Below, in pieces: positions 6,948-58,223 of a DNA stretch of 64,000 bases. Each line of letters starts with the position of its first letter. Position 1 is the first letter of the stretch. The stretch comes from Trichosphaerium sp. ATCC 40318 (taxonomy: Eukaryota > Protista > Tubulinea). The DNA lies in contig JALMLS010000640.1 of assembly GCA_038496445.1 (NCBI GenBank), positions 1-64,000 of the forward strand. Direction: 5' to 3'. Made by a program: the position numbers and the translations under genes. The notes below the pieces were generated by a model that had not been told where the DNA came from, did not search any database, and was given only the letters and a program-made list of their open reading frames with translations.

Positions 6948-7868
6948 CTACGGATGCAACGTCACTGTTACACCTGTAGCTTCTAGTGATTTGATACATC
7001 TCTTTGTAATGTTTTTACATCCACGCAATGATAGTACCTTTACACTAGAAAGTGGAGCAAGCCATTCATCCTTTACATTTGTGTTTGATAGAGAGATGGT
7101 ATGAGAATCAGCAAGATGTTTTATATGTTCTTCTCTGATACCTTTACAGCAAGAGAGATCAACTGTATGGACACCTTCCAACGCTTTAAGACTTACTGAT
7201 GTGGCGAGTGTACAGCAAGATAATGTTATGCTATGTGATCTTGACAAGGAAGACAATACGTCATCTGTGACATGAAACCAAGGAAGGTTTATATCTGGTA
7301 CTCCCAAGAGTGACTTTATACCCAACTCTGTAACTCCTACCTCACTTAAATAAATAGACTTCAAATGCTTGGCAATTGGTATTAAGCCTTTGTCTGTTAT
7401 ATTTGGAGCAAACTCAATAGTCAAGTGCTGGACACCACATACAGATATTAATCCTAAGTCTGTAATACGAGGACAATACATGATTGTCAGCTTGCGGACA
7501 GTACAAACATGTTTTAAACCTGAGTTTGTTATGTTTGTGTTGCCCGAAAGTAAAAGAGATTGGACGCCTGAAATCAATGCGAGATCTGAGTCTGTTGCTG
7601 TTCGGAAGTTCAAAAACGATATAAGCGTGTTTTTTAATAAAGGACTTCCTGAAAGGCGAGCACAGTGCGAAGTTGATCGAACGCTGATTTTGCCATAGCC
7701 AAGGTTGTTGTGGATTATAGATGATAATATACTACAGCTTTGAGCAATGGGATAGCGATCATTATTTGATACAAAAGAGAGCACGTGAGTGAGTATCTCC
7801 GCTGGAAAGTCCAAAAGTTGTTTTTCTTTTTTTTTCGATACTCTTTCTGTATTTGCTCTTTTAGCCAT
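6948..7868 (-). CDS. F-box/LRR protein
   Basis: LLDFPAEILTHVLSFV (F-box) followed by AMN1-like LRRs (ITDLGL, LEGVHTVDLSCC). Intronless. Confidence 0.9.
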   Translation of the reverse strand: MAKRANTERVSKKKEKQLLDFPAEILTHVLSFVSNNDRYPIAQSCSILSSIIHNNLGYGKISVRSTSHCARLSGSPLLKNTLISFLNFRTATDSDLALISGVQSLLLSGNTNITNSGLKHVCTVRKLTIMYCPRITDLGLISVCGVQHLTIEFAPNITDKGLIPIAKHLKSIYLSEVGVTELGIKSLLGVPDINLPWFHVTDDVLSSLSRSHSITLSCCTLATSVSLKALEGVHTVDLSCCKGIREEHIKHLADSHTISLSNTNVKDEWLAPLSSVKVLSLRGCKNITKRCIKSLEATGVTVTLHP

Positions 7869-22748: not shown

Positions 22749-23879
22749 TTATTTACATAATTGTCTATTCTCATCCCATTCCTTACGTTTATCACACACT
22801 TCACCATTGACAAATATACATTCAGAACACAATTGTCCATTCATATACCATCTCTTACTTTCACCATGTTTTTTACCCTCAACCCACGTGTTATGGTAGT
22901 TAAGTTGTCCATTTTCATACCATCCTTTACCTTCGCCATGTTGCTTACCATCAGCCCACATGTTCTGGTATTTAAGTTGTCCATTTTCATACCATTCCTT
23001 ACCTTCACCATGTGCTTCATCCTCAACCCAAAAGCTGTGGTCTGAAATCTGTCCATTTTCATACCATCCTTTCCTTTCGCCATGTTGCTTACCATCAGTC
23101 CACATGCACTGATACTTTAGTTGTCCATTCTCATTGTCATACCATCCTTTACTTTCACCATGTGCTTTACCATCAACCCACATGCATTGCCTCTCTTGTT
23201 GTCCATTTTTATACCATGTCTTAGTTTCACCATGTTGTTTACCATTGGCCCACATGTTATGGTACTTAAGTTGTCCATTTTCATGCCATCCCTTACTTTC
23301 GCCATGTTGTTTGCCCTCAACCCAAAAACTATGGTCTGAAATCTGTCCATTTTTATACCATCCCTTACTATCACCGTGTTGTTTATCATCAAACCACATG
23401 CATTGCTCCTCAAGTTGTCCATTCTCATGCCAATATTTGCTTTCGCCATGCTGCTTACCATCAACCCACGCGCATTGCCTCTCTAGTTGACCATTTTTAT
23501 ACCATCCTAAACAAAGTCCAGTTTTTTTACCATCAATTATTGTATACTGCCTCTCAAGTTGTCCGCTCTCATACCATTGTTTATACACTCCACTTGCAAT
23601 GTAATTATGAAGCTGTACCTTTCCACTTTTGTACCATTGTATCCATACTCCTTTCTTTTGTAGTGTTTCATCAAAATGTGTATTAATCGCAGCTCTCTTT
23701 GATAGTGTATGGAATTTTGTGAATGTTTCTGCATTGAACGTACAAATGTAAGTTTGAAGTTCACATGGGATATCCAGTAAACTCAAGGAGCCTGGTTTAC
23801 AGTGTATTTTTTTATGCTTTGCAGTTGACTGTAACAAAATCTGGTCAGCAAAAACACAAGGGAGAACAAAATTTGACAT
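22749..23879 (-). CDS. F-box-like + MORN-variant tandem-repeat protein
   Basis: LLDIPCELQTYI, then ~11-12 repeats of 24 aa (GESKGWYENGQL.....W.DGKQH). Intronless. Confidence 0.9.
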   Translation of the reverse strand: MSNFVLPCVFADQILLQSTAKHKKIHCKPGSLSLLDIPCELQTYICTFNAETFTKFHTLSKRAAINTHFDETLQKKGVWIQWYKSGKVQLHNYIASGVYKQWYESGQLERQYTIIDGKKTGLCLGWYKNGQLERQCAWVDGKQHGESKYWHENGQLEEQCMWFDDKQHGDSKGWYKNGQISDHSFWVEGKQHGESKGWHENGQLKYHNMWANGKQHGETKTWYKNGQQERQCMWVDGKAHGESKGWYDNENGQLKYQCMWTDGKQHGERKGWYENGQISDHSFWVEDEAHGEGKEWYENGQLKYQNMWADGKQHGEGKGWYENGQLNYHNTWVEGKKHGESKRWYMNGQLCSECIFVNGEVCDKRKEWDENRQLCK

Positions 23880-30500: not shown

Positions 30501-31343
30501 TCAACATATGATACACCCTTTCTCTCGTTTACCATTGACATAAGTAGATTGAGACTTCAATGTGCCATCAATGTTCCATGTCTTTTGTTCTCCATGAAGC
30601 TCGCCTTTTAAATAGTGGGCGACAGCCTTTAGTTGCCCATTTTTAAACCACCTCATTGCCTCTCCTTCAAGTTTACCATTAACATAGTTACATTGCTTAC
30701 GCATTTGACCATTTGGAAGCCAAGATTTTGCTTCACCCTCCATGTTACCTCTGACATAGTAACACTGATCACTTAACTTTCCGTTATCATGCCACATTTT
30801 GTATTCTCCTTCGAGTTTATCATTAACATAGTTTCTAAGCTCGTACTGCTTTCCAAACTCATCCCAACACTTGTACTCTCCTTCTAGTTTACTATTGGCA
30901 TAGTAACATTGATAACGTAATTGACCATTGAAGAACCATTGATTTTGTTCCCCTTCAACAAAATCTTGAACATAATTACACTTCATTTGAAGTGTACCAT
31001 TATCATGCCATTTCTTGTACTCTCCTTCAAGCTTACCTTTAACATAACAACCCTCTACTTTCAATGGACCAAAATCATACCATTTCTTAAACTCTCCTTC
31101 GAGTACACCATGATTCCAATGGTATTGTTGTAGTACTTGTACATTCGACTCATCAACTTTATTCCTTTTTATCCATTTGCCTTGTTTTTTGAAATCACAG
31201 TCAAACCTTGAACTCACAGCTGTTTGTTTTGATAACAGAGGCCATTGAACGTATAATTTAATATCCAAATCGACAATATCGAGTAGTAGCTCAGTAGGAA
31301 GACCCAATAAATGGCAAAGATTCGATTTTGTACCAGTATTCAT
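30501..31343 (-). CDS. F-box-like + MORN-variant repeat protein (minus strand; the ORF track strand is wrong)
   Basis: The forward sequence ends ttttgtaccagtattcat at 31343, so ATG AAT ACT GGT (MNTG) lies on the minus strand. LLGLPTELLLDI is followed by GKLEGEYKKWHDNG repeats. Confidence 0.9.
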   Translation of the reverse strand: MNTGTKSNLCHLLGLPTELLLDIVDLDIKLYVQWPLLSKQTAVSSRFDCDFKKQGKWIKRNKVDESNVQVLQQYHWNHGVLEGEFKKWYDFGPLKVEGCYVKGKLEGEYKKWHDNGTLQMKCNYVQDFVEGEQNQWFFNGQLRYQCYYANSKLEGEYKCWDEFGKQYELRNYVNDKLEGEYKMWHDNGKLSDQCYYVRGNMEGEAKSWLPNGQMRKQCNYVNGKLEGEAMRWFKNGQLKAVAHYLKGELHGEQKTWNIDGTLKSQSTYVNGKREKGCIIC

Positions 31344-36529: not shown

Positions 36530-37450
36530 ATGGCTAAAAGAGCAAATACAGAAAGAGTATCGAAAAAAAAAGAAAAACAACTTTTGGACTTTCCAGCGGA
36601 GATACTCACTCACGTGCTCTCTTTTGTATCAGATAATGATCGCTATCCCATTTCTCGAAGCTGTAGTATATTATCATCTATAATCCACAACAACCTTGGC
36701 TATGGCAAAATCAGCGTTCGATCAACTTCGCACTGTGCTCGCCTTTCAGGAAGTCCTTTATTAAAAAACACGCTTATATCGTTTTTGAACTTCCGAACAG
36801 CAACAGACTCAGATCTCGCATTGATTTCAGGCGTCCAATCTCTTTTACTTTCGGGCAACACAAACATAACAAACTCGGGTTTAAAACATGTTAGTACTGT
36901 CCGCAAGCTGACAATCATGTATTGTCCTCGTATTACAGACTTAGGATTAATATTTGTATGTGGTGTCCAGCACTTGACTATTGAGTTTGCTCCAAATATA
37001 ACAGACAAAGGCTTAATACCAATTGCCAAGCATTTGAAGTCTATTTATTTAAGTGAGGTAGGAGTTACAGAGTTGGGTATAAAGTCACTCTTGGGAGTAC
37101 CAGATATAAACCTTCCTTGGTTTCATGTCACAGATGACGTATTGTCTTCCTTGTCAAGATCACATAGCATAACATTATCTTGCTGTACACTCGCCACATC
37201 AGTAAGTCTTAAAGCGTTGGAAGGTGTCCATACAGTTGATCTCTCTTGCTGTAAAGGTATCAGAGAAGAACATATAAAACATCTTGCTGATTCTCATACC
37301 ATCTCTCTATCAAACACAAATGTAAAGGATGAATGGCTTGCTCCACTTTCTAGTGTAAAGGTACTATCATTGCGTGGATGTAAAAACATTACAAAGAGAT
37401 GTATCAAATCACTAGAAGCTACAGGTGTAACAGTGACGTTGCATCCGTAG
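36530..37450 (+). CDS. F-box/LRR protein (second copy)
   Basis: 306 aa, differing by a few residues from 6948-7868. Confidence 0.9.
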   Translation: MAKRANTERVSKKKEKQLLDFPAEILTHVLSFVSDNDRYPISRSCSILSSIIHNNLGYGKISVRSTSHCARLSGSPLLKNTLISFLNFRTATDSDLALISGVQSLLLSGNTNITNSGLKHVSTVRKLTIMYCPRITDLGLIFVCGVQHLTIEFAPNITDKGLIPIAKHLKSIYLSEVGVTELGIKSLLGVPDINLPWFHVTDDVLSSLSRSHSITLSCCTLATSVSLKALEGVHTVDLSCCKGIREEHIKHLADSHTISLSNTNVKDEWLAPLSSVKVLSLRGCKNITKRCIKSLEATGVTVTLHP

Positions 37451-40853: not shown

Positions 40854-42149
40854 ATGTCTAACAAAGTCAAACAATTTTTGGTCCAACTAATTTCCGAATC
40901 AAAATCTCGATTGTCTAACCACCAAACAACTACTGAAATGACATCATTAAAAACAGCTATAGCCTCAAACGATATAAAGAAAGTAAAAGAGCTGCTAAAG
41001 AACGGTGCTAACGCCAACGAACGAATAGATGACAGCGAAGGATGGGATTCTTGCAAGTAAGACAAAGTACCAAATACGTTAAATTATTCTTAACTTCATT
41101 TTAGGTACAACGTGCTTCATTTGGCTCTTGGTACAAAGGAAAAAGTACAAAACCGCAAAGACAAGGAATTAAACTGTCAATTAGTCACTCTACTTCTCAA
41201 ACATGGTGCTGATATAAACAGCCAGTATTCTCAGGGAGGCTGGAGTCTTAGGGGAGTTAAAAAGAGTGCTTTCCAGGTTCTTATTGACCGTATCTTTTCC
41301 AGTCCAACTCAAGAGCTCTACGACCTTTTTAAATACGCTCTAAAGAAAGGCGCTGATCCTAACGGCACTATATCAACCGGAGCATCAACTATGAGGACGG
41401 ACAGAAGCTCAAAAGTAACACTTGTAACGAGAGCTGCAAAGGAGCCGAGAGTCTTACAAATCCTACTTGCTGCTTCTGCTGATCCCAACGCATTCAATCA
41501 AGTGCGTGTGAACAATGAGTACGGACACAGAGAGAATACAAAGACCACAGCATTGCACAGTGTATTGGCGTCAAGTGGAGAAAATTACAAAGAGCTTTCG
41601 CTTTTACTACTGTTACATCATGGCGCTGATGTTGAGTTGAGAAAAGAATACATAGAACAAGTAGAAATACCTAAACCTGCGTCATCTATTGGTATTGAAG
41701 ATCCACGACAAGGAGGATATCACTCAGGACTCCGTGATATTCACGTCAAGGCAACACCACTCAATATTGCTCTTGAACAAACAGAGTTGAGTAAAGTACT
41801 TATTCTCAGAATGTATGGTGCAAACGTCAATGCGCCCTTGATCAAAGATTCTGACACAACAAGTTGTATGGAAATTATTGAGAGCCTAAAACAAGATGAA
41901 GAGATTAAAGAATTGAAGAAGCTCGCACTTAAGCACAGATGGCATCCAAGATTACATCTTCATTTTCCTCGTGTTTTCAGAGATCAAGTGTTCTTCTTGA
42001 TGCTTTGTCTCAATCGAGCTATTCAAGCTTACATACCTCCAGAGCTTCTTCAATACATTGTATCAATCGCTGCTGATCAAGGATGCTTCTCTCCTTCACT
42101 TGTATTTGACATGGATAAAATCTTTGATGCTGAATATCAACAACAATAA
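40854..42149 (+). CDS. Ankyrin-repeat protein with a C-terminal W.P..H..FP..FR...IP.ELL..I motif
   Basis: Exon 1 (40854-41056), intron gtaaga...ttttag, then an exon with ANK repeats. Confidence 0.9.
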
Positions 42150-52850: not shown

Positions 52851-53043
52851 ATACCCTTTTAAAGCAAAGAAACTAAAACAAAGGAAGCTTTCAAGCAAGT
52901 CAAAAAAGCATTTGAGACTTGACGAGAAGTCTTCTTATTGGTGACATTTGCCAAAAAATGACAACAAACTTTCTTCACAAATTGACTTGGGCTGATGATA
53001 TTTATTTGTAATGATTTACAAGTATATGGACTCTTCTTTAATT

Positions 53044-56000
53044 CTAAGACCCACGATCGAGTTTGTGAACTCTCCAAGCGTTTGCATTGCTTCCAGGTCT
53101 TCTTGGTCTACATCCATTGCAGCAAGCCTTCTTTGTAATGCAGTAGCATCTGACAGCACGTTTACCTTGGAATACGGTCGCAGTATTTTGTGTGTAGACA
53201 TTGTTGGAGCACTCAATATCTTTGTTAGCTGCAGCAGCACAATCATTGCCAAAGTGACGAGCATTCCAAGGTGATACACGTCCTCGGACCAGAACTTCTT
53301 TTTTACACTGTTTCCAAGTTTCTCCAGGGCAACTATGATGTCTTTTCCCACCACCAAGGTTTGCGTAATTAAAATGGCCATCACAGAAGGACTGCGCTTG
53401 TCTCAAGACAAGGTGAGGTGGGTTGTATGGAGGTGTATCTCTTTTTGGTTCCAAGTCGCAGTTTCTGCAGTCGTTCGTCATTGGCCATTTAGGAACACGT
53501 GTTACATTCTTGTTCAGGTTTACATCATCGCAAGAGATGCATTCATTTCCGTGTCGCCATGGGATGTTTTGATGTTGTGGAGGTGATACATAGTTGGCAA
53601 AGAGGCGTCCTGATCCTTTGATGTAGCAAGTTGCATGGTAAGCTGGATCTCCAGGTGCCACTTCTTCTTCTAAACCAAACGTCTCGGATGGGACACGAGC
53701 ACGAACATTGAAGCATACATCAACGTTTCGGAAGTTTTCTCCCAGGTTAACAACTCTGTCTTTGCATAGTTGAGGAAGGAGATTGGCTTGGCCGTTGTAT
53801 CTGCTTGCTGCAAGTTGTCTTGGCATTACTACAAATCCGTTACATTGACGTCTTGAATTGCATTGGCTAGCACAAACATCAACACTATCGTAGATTCTAT
53901 GGCAGTCTAAAAGAAAAAGTGTTAGGGTAAAACAAAAACGCAAACAACTTCATGTTTCCTTCGTTTTAAATTACTTGCACAAATAATAGTGGTACGTACC
54001 AAAAACGTCACGTGTGTTTGGGAAGTAACAGTGATCAATACGCCTAAAACCAAAAGTAAGCCACAAGCTACAAAACAAAACCAGATAAAAGCGAGAAAAT
54101 ACAAACACGTACGTGAAACCACCAGCAGGGTTCTCAAGTCCGTAAATGTCTTTCACTTGGCTGTTGACAAAGTTAACGTCAATGCAATCTCTGTAGCCTC
54201 TCCATAGCCACTGAATAACATAGTCTCCAAAGGCAGCTCCATTAGGCATTTCAAGTCTTATCATATCAGCATCTTGTGGTCTGTGTGCATAATGGTCAAA
54301 CTTGAAGGCAGCAAGAACAAAATTAAGCCTGTTGTTCTTGTATTCGCAATAATTTTTGACTTCAAGATTATTCTTATAACCGAACAATTTAGCATCATCT
54401 CTCCAAACACCGAAAGCTTCTGGCCGTGGAATATAATTTGGAGCATTGCGCCTTATCTCTCCGCTATAGAACTGAGAGTGAGCATTAAAGCCAGCATCAC
54501 GTGTTCTGAAACGTCTGTGGTATACAGGCAAGTTCTGGCAACGAGCATTAGGAGCTTCTCTGAAATACCGTTCCAATAATGCAAAAGACACTTCTCTGAG
54601 TCTTGGTTCATCTTCTGCCTTCACAATGACATAATATGAAGGTGAAGAATGTCCAACAGACCATTCAATCTCCATTGACTGTCCGCGACCGAGTTGAACA
54701 TGCGGAGAAGCTTGTCTTTTTGATGGGCAAGGTGTTTGTGTACTTGCTACGTTTTGGCTTCTTCCCAGACTGAATCCCCAGTTGTGAGCATGAGCTGTAG
54801 GGAAGGATACCAAGCCAATCAGGAAAAGAGCCAATACAATAGTGGTTGTCATCTTTCCAGTCGAACGCAGTGTTATGCCGAGGATAGCAAGAGCCATAAA
54901 GAGGAAAGAAGCACTCGATTTGACGGCTGGAGATGTTGAGGCGCCTCGAGCAGCAATGACTGTTCTACCAGGGTTGGCAGGAGGAAGAGTGGTACGAAGA
55001 CATTTGCATAATCGCAAGCTAAAGAAACAAGTAAGTACAACTTCATAATAAAAAATAAACTTTTCACGTGCCCGATTCTGGGATCACCACTTTTGGAGTC
55101 ACATGATACAACTCCTCTATTGCGTCCTTGAGCTGAGCATCTAGTATCATCATAATAACATAGACCATCAGTGCCCATCGTAACACCTTTGTTGCTGCAT
55201 CCGCTTACATAAGGAAGTTTGCATGGGAAACTCTGGGTTATGATGCGTTGTTCAATACGTGTTGGACTGTTGACTCGCTCCAAATGCACACGATCACACT
55301 TGAGGTTCTGTTCTGCGCATCTCTCTGTACAAGATTGTCCTAGCTGTGAAGAAGTAAGTATAAAGTTGTAACATACTCAGAAAACACGTGTTATTACATT
55401 GGTTTGGAACCATGTTTGAAATGGCTTTTTCTTGGTTGACTCTCTGAGTCTCAGCGGTCCAGCGTTGCCATTTGGCCAATAAAAGGCACCAGTATTGGCG
55501 TCACCTTGCTTGATCAAACAATGAAACGTTACTCTTCCTGTTCCCTTTGGAGGAGCCTTCCACTTCCATGTCGATTTGAGAGGCTTCAATTGAGCTGTGT
55601 TATGTGTCAAACTCTGACGGCATCCATGAGAGTTTGGCCAAGGTAACTGGAAGTATGCTGTAGCCCAAGTTAATGAACCAACAAAGAAAGTGAAGAAAAA
55701 AGAAAGGCAAATAACAACGTACGATTCTGCTCTTGTGGTAGAAGCCATTCACCAACTCTTCTGCCAGCATTATCTTGGGCGTATATGAGGATACCTCGAT
55801 ACTTAAAGTCGTAGTGGTTGACGCGGATGTTGATATCCATAACGGTGTCAGGAACATATTCTGTAAGCTTGGCATCTTCAGGACCTGCCCAAGTAGTATA
55901 CCGCCCGCTAGCAGCTACCTTTATAGCCCAGGACATGCGAGGTTCCGGTCTTTTGTTACATACAAGTCTGTCGACCTCTCCGTTTCTTCTTCTTCTGTAA

Positions 56001-56134
56001 GAACCAAATGGACATCCCCAGTCGGGCGAAGAGGCATCACAATTCGGTACCGATGAAGTAGGCCTTGAAGCGCCATAGACAGAGGCTAATAGGGCGACCA
56101 AGCAAAGCGAGGCTATGAAAAGGGTTGCTCGCAT
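53044..56134 (-). CDS. Secreted multidomain protein: Reeler + Cys-rich + paired hydrophobic segments + His-brace LPMO-like domain + Cys-rich modules
   Basis: Reeler motifs YVP...YRGILIYAQ...VGEW...LTH...WKAPPKGTGRVTFHCLI. Internal AHA|HNW, EWSVGH, GDYVIQWLWRGYRDCIDV. Five introns, one of them GC-AG. Confidence 0.8.
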
Positions 56135-58223
56135 TTCTAAATACAGATGTTACAAAAGTGGTATCACGTGATAATAAGAGAGAAAGATACTGTTCTAAAA
56201 CAAAACGTAACGTTGTTGGGACAATAATCCGTACTTGTAGACTTGTTGCCAATGATGTTTGTGTTTACTTAAATTGATAAAATAGGATACAAATCAGCAA
56301 GCTAGCGGTGAGTGATTCAAACGTACGCTAGTTAAAGCCATGTATTGTCCATACTAGTACTATCTTTAGATTCACATGCTTTTTGGTGTAAAGCGAAAAG
56401 TTGCCTGAGTAAGGAGTGCACAAAACGGAGGCTATTGTATTGTACACTTGGCGTACGATAGTTAAACTAGATGAATTGAGCCAGTAACTTAAGTTTGTTT
56501 AGTTTTTAGTTGTATGTGTAGGTTTGGATTTTGTAGTAGCGCTAGGCACAACAAAAAACGTGTTTAGCGCAAGTACAACAAGTATTATTCTACAGGTTTC
56601 GAAGTGTTTGCTATGCTAAAAAGCCACAGAAACCTACACTTACTTGGTAAAAAATGTGACCAAAGTTTGTACTGAGAAACGGGCTTTTTATTCCACCTCA
56701 CAAGAAGATTACTTTACAATGTCGTATCACTTGATTATTATTCAACAAGTGAAGAAAGCTCACTAAACAATTCAGATGCACCAAAAATCACGTGATGTTT
56801 AAAACAACACCTTTCTTATTTATTACACTACACACACATACGTGATTTACATTGCGTGGTTTAATCTACATGGTACGCTAGAACCCTTTTTATTTGTACA
56901 TGTGCATCACCAGATTAACAGAGAAGACGATGAAAACCATACAACTGCAAAAAAAGCCCTCATTTCGTAGATTAGCTTTACCAACAAAAGCAGTGTCACT
57001 CAGTAATTCACAACAGCAATTTTTTACGCTAGTGCAAAATAAAAGGTACACACTCAGTGTTTTCGTAAGATTCAAATTTAAAGAAGGGATAGCAGTGCAA
57101 AAGAGTACTTATTCAACAGGTCGGGCTATTATTTTATCCCGGCGGTTTTTGTTAGTTGTACATTATCTTTTTCTGTGTTCTGTAAACTTACTTGATGTAA
57201 CTTTTTTTCAAGCGACTAGAATACCTGCTAAGCACTTCTCACGAGATAGTGAAGCACTATGCTTACACAGAAAATAAGTTGGAAAAAAACATGAATCACA
57301 GCGAATTTTACGTCTCTACAGACGTCTAAGTTACTCTGAAATTGCGTTGTAGCACTTTGTCAAAAATTACATTTGATTCTTTCAGTGTGGGCAATGCTTG
57401 TTTACGAAGTAGGCCAATACCACTACTTTATTGCGCATAACATGTAATCCGTAGTTCGAAGCAACTTACTTTACATAGTGCGCTTTAAATAGAGCAACAT
57501 CCTCTAGGTGCGACTAAAACTATTTACTAGGGAGTGGGGTTATGGGATATACAGGACGTTTTTGTTTCATAGGTGAAGATTATGTAGTAATACCTGTGTT
57601 CATAGCAAACTTGCATATTCAACTAGCTAGCTAGCAATAAGTTGTTCTCGCTTGCCATCTGCTCTCGTTGCGACTGGAGCTCTCGTTCATATAGAAGTTA
57701 TTGCCAAACAAATAGGTTTAAATGCGATACAAGTTAGCCTACTCGCTGATGTGCATAGTGATTAGTTAGGAAAAAGCGTTATCATATCCTAAAAAGCCAA
57801 TGCGATAGCTTTGACACTAACATATATTGGTGGAGCTACCTTCGTCTTGCTGTTTTAGTTCATTAAACGTGTAGAAGACATTTAATTGTGCTACAATAAA
57901 ACAAATTAGCTTAGTTTAGTTTTTTTGGTCGACGCAGATTATTTGCAAAAGCAAATACATTTCTCACTTTTTTCACTTCCAACCTTTTGATCTACTCAAT
58001 GGTTTAGACCCAGTTGGCTTTATTCTTGTGGGAGCTCTTAACCGCCAACGCAATATGTACGTTTGCAGCCACAAAAAGTAACTAAATTGCACTAAGCCAG
58101 TTTCATAGCGATTTCATTGCAAAAGCGTCATGATAATGCATCTGTATTTGACCGCTTTAGTCTCACAAAAATACGTCCCGTAAAGTAATTTCGCATTTAC
58201 GCAATCCGTGCCTTATCTTTGAA

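Follow-up and report, generated by a model that had tools for sequence, protein, structure and literature searches.

A gene on the minus strand of a 64,000-nucleotide stretch of DNA from Trichosphaerium sp. ATCC 40318 (NCBI GenBank assembly GCA_038496445.1, contig JALMLS010000640.1, positions 1 to 64,000; hereafter the window) probably encodes a secretory precursor in which one polypeptide chain would be split in the membrane of the endoplasmic reticulum (ER), freeing an internal histidine, H393, as the N-terminus of a domain resembling lytic polysaccharide monooxygenases (LPMOs). The protein comprises, in order, a signal peptide, a Reeler domain, a Cys-rich module, hydrophobic segment 1, the loop RSTGK, hydrophobic segment 2 ending in A-H-A, the LPMO-like domain, which begins with the residues HNW and is called the HNW domain here, a further Cys-rich region and a PAN/apple-like module (Table 1). 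An earlier note on this DNA, made from its letters alone, had proposed such a polyprotein, and all the strings that it quoted are present on the minus strand: MRATLF...VYG, SASFLFMALAILGITL, RSTGK, MTTTIVLALFLIGLVSFPTAHA, HNW, EIEWSVGH and GDYVIQWLWRGYRDCIDV. The His codon of HNW lies at 54786-54784, as claimed, and the Cys-rich sequence described after GDYVIQWLWRGYRDCIDV is there and reaches the stop codon at 53046-53044. Exons assembled from the reverse complement of 56300-52900 gave a frame of 918 amino acids (aa) with no internal stop. In a full-length alignment the whole of it is colinear with 8 homologues, beginning at the signal peptide and extending into the C-terminal region.

We searched 1.84 billion cluster representatives (50% identity clusters) by HMMER with segment 2 plus the HNW domain. 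This identified 370 homologous clusters at E<=0.001, of which 184 matched at E<=1e-10, the best match being just 38% identical. The family has no Pfam model. Among the matches listed, HNW is present in 134 of 150, and in 93 of these 134 representatives the site is internal, with the H at residue 49-921; 37 N-terminal forms start with Met. Both the conservation of HNW and the Reeler-hairpin-HNW layout, which the earlier note had left to be looked for in homologues, are thus found in the family. The recurrence of the layout in 93 of 134 representatives at about 30% identity is far beyond chance. In all 134 representatives the His occupies position +1 after a putative signal-peptidase site, as H393 does behind A-H-A in the window. 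The residue at -1 is A in 107, G in 15, S in 11 and T in 1, and that at -3 is A in 53, V in 39, T in 13, S in 12, C in 10 and G in 7, with no exception. A FastTree phylogeny of the HNW domain shows the internal and N-terminal architectures interspersed, with 14-25 changes between them on the unrooted tree. No evolutionary direction was inferred from it because of the lack of a root and the possible truncation of N-terminal forms.

The region before HNW is likewise conserved in form. Two hydrophobic segments surround a short loop in 86 of 92 internal homologues; the loops have a median of 5 residues and contain 185 K+R as against 28 D+E, 79 of them being net positive and 1 net negative. Judged by its sequence, this charge is the positive-inside signature both of a cytosolic hairpin loop and of the n-region of a signal peptide. 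The h-region before HNW is equally hydrophobic in the 93 internal and the 37 N-terminal signal-peptide forms. The proposal that segment 2 is an internal signal peptide is well matched by these features, as a basic n-region, an h-region, A, G, S or T at -1 (134/134) and a small residue at -3 are all kept family-wide. Segment 1, with 13 strongly hydrophobic residues, may be a stop-transfer segment or a tail resembling a glycosylphosphatidylinositol (GPI) signal. The succession of GAS, TSPAVKSSAS and the 13-residue FLFMALAILGITL resembles a GPI signal, and an internally placed GPI signal is functional in DAF-hGH chimeras (PMC2288913). A search for standalone Reeler plus Cys-module relatives ending at segment 1 gave only five truncated or mispredicted models.

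From these elements we propose the following course of events. The N-terminal signal peptide would start translocation and be cut, and the Reeler domain and Cys module would enter the lumen, until segment 1 halted transfer and left RSTGK in the cytosol. Segment 2 would then re-insert N-in/C-out in the manner of a signal peptide, restarting translocation, and signal peptidase would cut behind A-H-A (A392), making H393 a free N-terminus and residue 1. Its amino group and imidazole, together with H438, would form a histidine-brace copper site on the LPMO-like beta-sandwich. The mature downstream protein would consist of the LPMO-like domain, the Cys-rich region and the PAN/apple-like module. The Reeler protein would stay tethered, whether through the hairpin, through segment 1 alone following trimming by signal peptide peptidase, or through a GPI anchor.

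The likeness of the HNW domain to LPMOs is seen in its invariant residues and its predicted fold. In an alignment of 129 domains with a mean column identity of 14%, H1, N2, W3, R9 and H46 are invariant, and P19, G45, Y74, D144, Y149, P155, G187, W195, G197, Y198, D200 and D203 are near-invariant. With this alignment AlphaFold2 predicted a confident beta-sandwich with a helical insertion (predicted local distance difference test score, pLDDT, 93; predicted template modelling score, pTM, 0.90), in which Y198, a candidate for the axial Tyr of LPMOs, is placed at the beginning of the last strand. Foldseek against PDB alone returned weak, generic beta-sandwich matches, with LPMOs at E of about 0.02. 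In an exhaustive VIA re-examination of the Foldseek list, LPMOs filled about 28 of the first 50 rows, and all of these superpose residue 1 of the model on the mature LPMO N-terminus. Pilins, chaperones and complement domains gave structure-based identities of 4-14%, and LPMOs up to 22%. By shape, the closest ESM Atlas entry was a cercozoan cluster with PF03067 (template modelling score 0.52), and PF03067 is likewise carried by the clusters that language-model features place nearest (score 0.93). The predicted fold is thus best described as closest to those of LPMOs and the LPMO-like X325 proteins. The suggestion in the earlier note of an LPMO-like domain after HNW agrees with these predictions and with the invariance of H1 and H46.

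The N-terminal domain is, by homology, a Reeler domain, because the window protein (aa 88-321) aligns to homologue P0019 (91-323, E=1e-26), of which residues 90-192 match Pfam Reeler at 6e-10, because 40 of 59 homologous N-terminal domains scanned alone match PF02014 (best 7e-12), and because the family profile matches the F-spondin reeler structures 2ZOU, 2ZOT and 3COO at about 3e-6. A Pfam scan of the window's five exon translations gave no Reeler match on the separate pieces, because intron 1 splits the domain. Residues invariant in the family's Reeler domain are M67 and W69 (M-x-W), H156, K162 and K187, together with the motif LIKxGxANxGxF. The column of H156 is occupied by Glu in the F-spondin reeler in the profile alignment. 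The invariant Met-x-Trp, His and Lys have no counterpart in the F-spondin reeler and could form a heme or Cu(I) ligand set. An ESM Atlas search with the Reeler half, PF02014 excluded, gave no usable match. In the Cys module of exon 3 the conserved cysteines are C229, C233, C240, C265, C273, C286, C293 and C305. This module also shows a weak, sub-threshold match to the last 90 or so positions of Glyco_transf_18 (PF15024, E 0.0025), which homologues P0019 and P0065 show as well. P0065 carries a DOMON insert (aa 339-436, 5.8e-4) and P0019 thrombospondin type 1 repeats (aa 403-458) in the stretch from the Reeler domain to the internal signal peptide; the upstream half is modular.

The two halves of the gene are joined across intron 3, which has a non-canonical GC-AG boundary. 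Four of the gene's introns are GT-AG, three of them with the donor GTACGT, and the intron 3 donor, GCACGT, fits the pattern G(T/C)ACGT shared by those three. The nearest GT donor, at 55067, would cause a frameshift and a stop 17 codons later. This and other GT-AG pairs were tried and rejected, as the conserved frame was lost in every case. Across the junction the window reads SCDSKSGDPRIG followed by LRLCKC, and the transcript-derived Rhizamoeba homologue P0012 reads SCTYKSEDPRIGYRFCTC. DPRIG plus LRLCKC in the window thus corresponds to DPRIGYRFCTC in P0012, both in the arrangement C-x13-CxC with the same 13-residue cysteine spacing, and the C-x-C motif after the junction is kept in 8 of 8 aligned homologues. 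The GC-AG splice was accepted because protein homology spans the junction with identical spacing. The single spliced frame through 55019-55071 that the earlier note had described is in this way backed by homologues, and by the same fusion on single transcripts of relatives. A naive GT-AG gene caller would break the gene at 55019-55071.

Complete open reading frames (ORFs) for the homologues P0001 and P0171 each lie on a single Trinity transcript of Flabellula baltica; P0012 lies on a Trinity transcript of Rhizamoeba saxonica, and P0015 is an MMETSP transcript. Several other fused homologues are found on metatranscriptome contigs that exceed the ORF only slightly in length (2994 nt with 976 aa in one case). 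For the locus itself, only one public read run, X1, contained 8% of the words. It yielded two exact contigs of 151 nt, both within exon 4, and diverged contigs (85-93% alike) over parts of exons 1, 2, 4 and 6 (window 53000-56200). At 55725 the loose end of one of the latter runs through a spliced exon 1-2 junction, probably of a paralogue. These diverged contigs suggest that the sample expresses paralogues of the gene.

Two hydrophobic segments with a basic loop between them are also typical of an uncleaved hairpin, and the chain might cross the membrane twice with both halves extracellular, the helical hairpin joining them and the His being an ordinary internal residue. We consider this unlikely, since 37 members have the same H directly behind an ordinary N-terminal signal peptide, whose removal must make it residue 1, and since the internal forms always keep small residues at -3 and -1; an uncleaved hairpin gives no reason for a conserved A-x-A before the H. 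Less probable still is a division into two genes or transcripts, with the Reeler gene ending after a GT-AG splice at 55067 and the HNW gene starting at M371 (54852). The window does offer that GT donor, with its stop 17 codons on, and a Met precisely at the start of segment 2, and the X1 contigs leave the junction at the locus uncovered. However, the frame after the intron encodes the conserved CxC motif and its spacer at the exact spacing of the homologues, the GCACGT donor follows the pattern of three of the gene's four GT donors, and the fused ORFs of relatives lie on single Trinity or MMETSP transcripts. Moreover, a Met is missing from 56 of 91 internal homologues at the place where the initiator of a separate protein would need to be, and separate translation therefore cannot be the general source of the HNW protein. 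A separate gene starting at MTTTIV, which the earlier note had named as the refuting case, is thus unlikely as a rule.

Other points count against a cleaved, LPMO-like precursor. The cleavage would follow from sequence features, read across the whole family; segment 1, at 13 residues, is short, which makes its stop-transfer role uncertain; some of the apparent N-terminal forms may be 5'-truncated contigs; and none of the X1 contigs lies over intron 3 or the segment 1/2 region. A Pfam scan of the window's HNW domain gave no family at E<=1, AA9 (PF03443) was matched only at 0.026, short of significance, in 3 of the 129 HNW members, and a profile of the 129 domains gave no match to PDB sequences at E<=10. 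The domain might be a metal-free beta-sandwich binding module whose likeness to LPMOs is merely that of a common fold. This seems improbable given that H1 and H46 are invariant over 129 sequences at 14% mean column identity, that H1 is always at the signal-peptidase site, and that LPMOs are strongly over-represented among the top structural matches and the nearest ESM Atlas clusters. Copper binding and catalysis by the HNW domain are putative. There is a substantial, if minority, chance that the protein is cleaved and binds copper and does not cleave polysaccharides, serving instead in copper binding or handling of the X325/Bim1 type, or as a redox protein with another substrate. A joint function of the two halves in prey-wall recognition and oxidative attack is speculation.

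The two halves might also form a 1:1 redox or metal pair, in which the tethered Reeler half would serve to reduce or to load copper in the LPMO-like half once released. We think this doubtful. The idea arises because an invariant Met/His(/Trp) set, when found in a beta-sandwich, points to heme-b or Cu(I) binding; the Met-x-Trp, His and Lys of the Reeler domain would suit either a heme-b ligand pair of the type found in DOMON and cellobiose dehydrogenase cytochrome domains, or a Met/His/Trp Cu(I) site. Such a pair would have its analogue in cellobiose dehydrogenase, whose cytochrome domain feeds fungal LPMOs, and would be used at the surface or in the phagosome of predatory protists.

Downstream of the HNW domain, the Cys-rich region contains the conserved motifs DPxDPxFYSTCY, WRxxxxCISCxD and CxNCDxEP. 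In a model of the C-terminal region (pLDDT 79.6) this Cys-rich region, including the first 160 residues of exon 6, is predicted with moderate confidence and had no structural match. In the structure search the last 127 residues matched PAN, apple, WSC and MANEC modules, with scores of 6.3 for the HGF N domain, 6.2 for leech antiplatelet protein and 5.8 for Sarcocystis lectin, and also the TgMIC4 apple domains, Wsc1 and modules at the N-terminus of two copper radical oxidases. On this model the PAN/apple-like module is probably a binding module appended to a copper-type domain. The window protein ends some 60-80 residues before its homologues (53044-53110, minus strand), and lacks their terminal DPxC...CC...PPC module. 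With the last 60-80 residues of the homologues as query, tblastn found neither a further exon downstream of 53044 nor another copy within the window.

LPMO-type copper sites require the free amino group of residue 1, and LPMO domains are therefore expected only straight after an N-terminal signal peptide, the rule by which most LPMO discovery pipelines search. Compared with the known LPMOs of AA10/AA15 (PF03067), AA9, AA11, AA13 and AA16, the window's domain has no significant Pfam or PDB sequence match. N2, W3 and R9 are invariant as well in its family, the second His already occurs at position 46, and most members carry the domain mid-protein behind an internal signal peptide and not N-terminally. 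The X325 proteins are small and carry a GPI anchor at the C-terminus, whereas the HNW half has no hydrophobic tail at its C-terminus and ends in Cys-rich and PAN-like modules. Its identity to X325 (LaX325, PDB 6IBH; the fungal Bim1 type) is merely 14%.

Precursors with alternating stop-transfer and internal signals, cut at -3/-1 sites in the ER lumen, are familiar from flaviviruses, pestiviruses, hepaciviruses and bunyaviruses. The present family differs from these viral polyproteins in being a cellular, multigene one of free-living protists with a single proposed internal cut. A cellular, non-viral precedent is mammalian IGSF1, whose precursor has a signal peptide at its N-terminus and a linker containing two transmembrane segments. 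The second of these is an internal signal peptide, which signal peptidase cuts co-translationally before signal peptide peptidase acts on it (PMC5841168). The window protein resembles it in its N-terminal signal peptide, stop-transfer-like segment, basic loop and second segment with a -3/-1 site. IGSF1 differs in that its halves are arrays of Ig loops and its cut is not needed for a catalytic or metal-binding N-terminal residue. The N-terminal half of the window protein shares its Reeler domain with F-spondin, reelin, insect Reeler/noduler and FRRS1, but compared with F-spondin the family has its own invariant Met-x-Trp, His and Lys.

Histidine-brace proteins and precursors processed by signal peptidase are each known; as far as we found, the combination and the sequence family are not. 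A literature search, in which most subscription journals were not covered, turned up neither a description of the family nor one of an LPMO-like domain preceded by an internal signal peptide. The family points to a second route to a histidine brace, as an internal signal peptide behind a hairpin would create the His in mid-precursor and at the same time yield a Reeler partner. If the cut is real, a new LPMO-like family is added and the search space for histidine braces extends to internal domains. It would also be the second natural eukaryotic case, after IGSF1, of signal peptidase acting as a polyprotein processor, and one in which chemistry clearly explains why a cut is made. In amoebae and marine heterotrophs, the biology of copper oxidative enzymes becomes testable.

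Table 1. Features of the precursor gene, with window coordinates
Feature	Position	Strand	Basis or remark
Whole gene	56134-53044	minus	6 exons, 918 aa plus TAG
Exon 1	56134-55723	minus	script assembly of exons from reverse complement
Exon 2	55657-55398	minus	script assembly of exons
Exon 3	55343-55072	minus	script assembly of exons
Exon 4	55018-54113	minus	script assembly of exons
Exon 5	54043-54000	minus	peptide RIDHCYFPNTRDVF
Exon 6	53906-53044	minus	stop codon TAG at 53046-53044 included
Intron 1	55722-55658	minus	interrupts Reeler domain
Intron 2	55397-55344	minus	before exon 3
Intron 3	55071-55019	minus	non-canonical GC-AG, donor GCACGT
Intron 5	53999-53907	minus	between exons 5 and 6
Start codon and N-terminal signal peptide, aa 1-21, MRATLFIASLCLVALLASVYG	56072..56134	minus	aligns with N-termini of P0001, P0002, P0013
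Reeler domain, aa ~58-222	55404..55963	minus	homologue alignment, Pfam and profile matches
M67	55936-55934	minus	invariant in family's Reeler domain
W69	55928-55930	minus	invariant in family's Reeler domain
H156	55604-55602	minus	invariant in family's Reeler domain
Cys-rich module after Reeler, aa 225-315	55072..55343	minus	exon 3
Hydrophobic segment 1, F353-L365, FLFMALAILGITL	54868..54906	minus	Ser/Ala/Gly-rich stretch before it
Basic loop RSTGK, aa 366-370	54853..54867	minus	putatively cytosolic
Hydrophobic segment 2, M371-A392, ends A-H-A	54787..54852	minus	putative internal signal peptide by -3/-1 rule
LPMO-like HNW domain, aa 393-616	54115..54786	minus	alignment and predicted fold
H393 (domain H1)	54786-54784	minus	invariant
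H438 (domain H46)	54651-54649	minus	invariant
Y590 (domain Y198)	54195-54193	minus	inside W-x-G-Y-R-D-C-I-D-V
Cys-rich region, exon 5 and first part of exon 6	53428..54043	minus	conserved motifs
PAN/apple-like domain, last ~127 aa	53047..53427	minus	model-based structural matches

Several other ORFs in the window show repeat-domain matches. Two ORFs of 306 aa with LRR_6 matches, at 6948-7868 (minus) and 36530-37450 (plus), gave identical spurious tblastn scores and resemble inverted duplicated genes about 29 kb apart. MORN-repeat (MORN_2) ORFs at 22752-23879 (minus) and 30504-31343 (minus) lie 7 kb apart, and an ankyrin-repeat ORF is located at 41112-42146 (plus).

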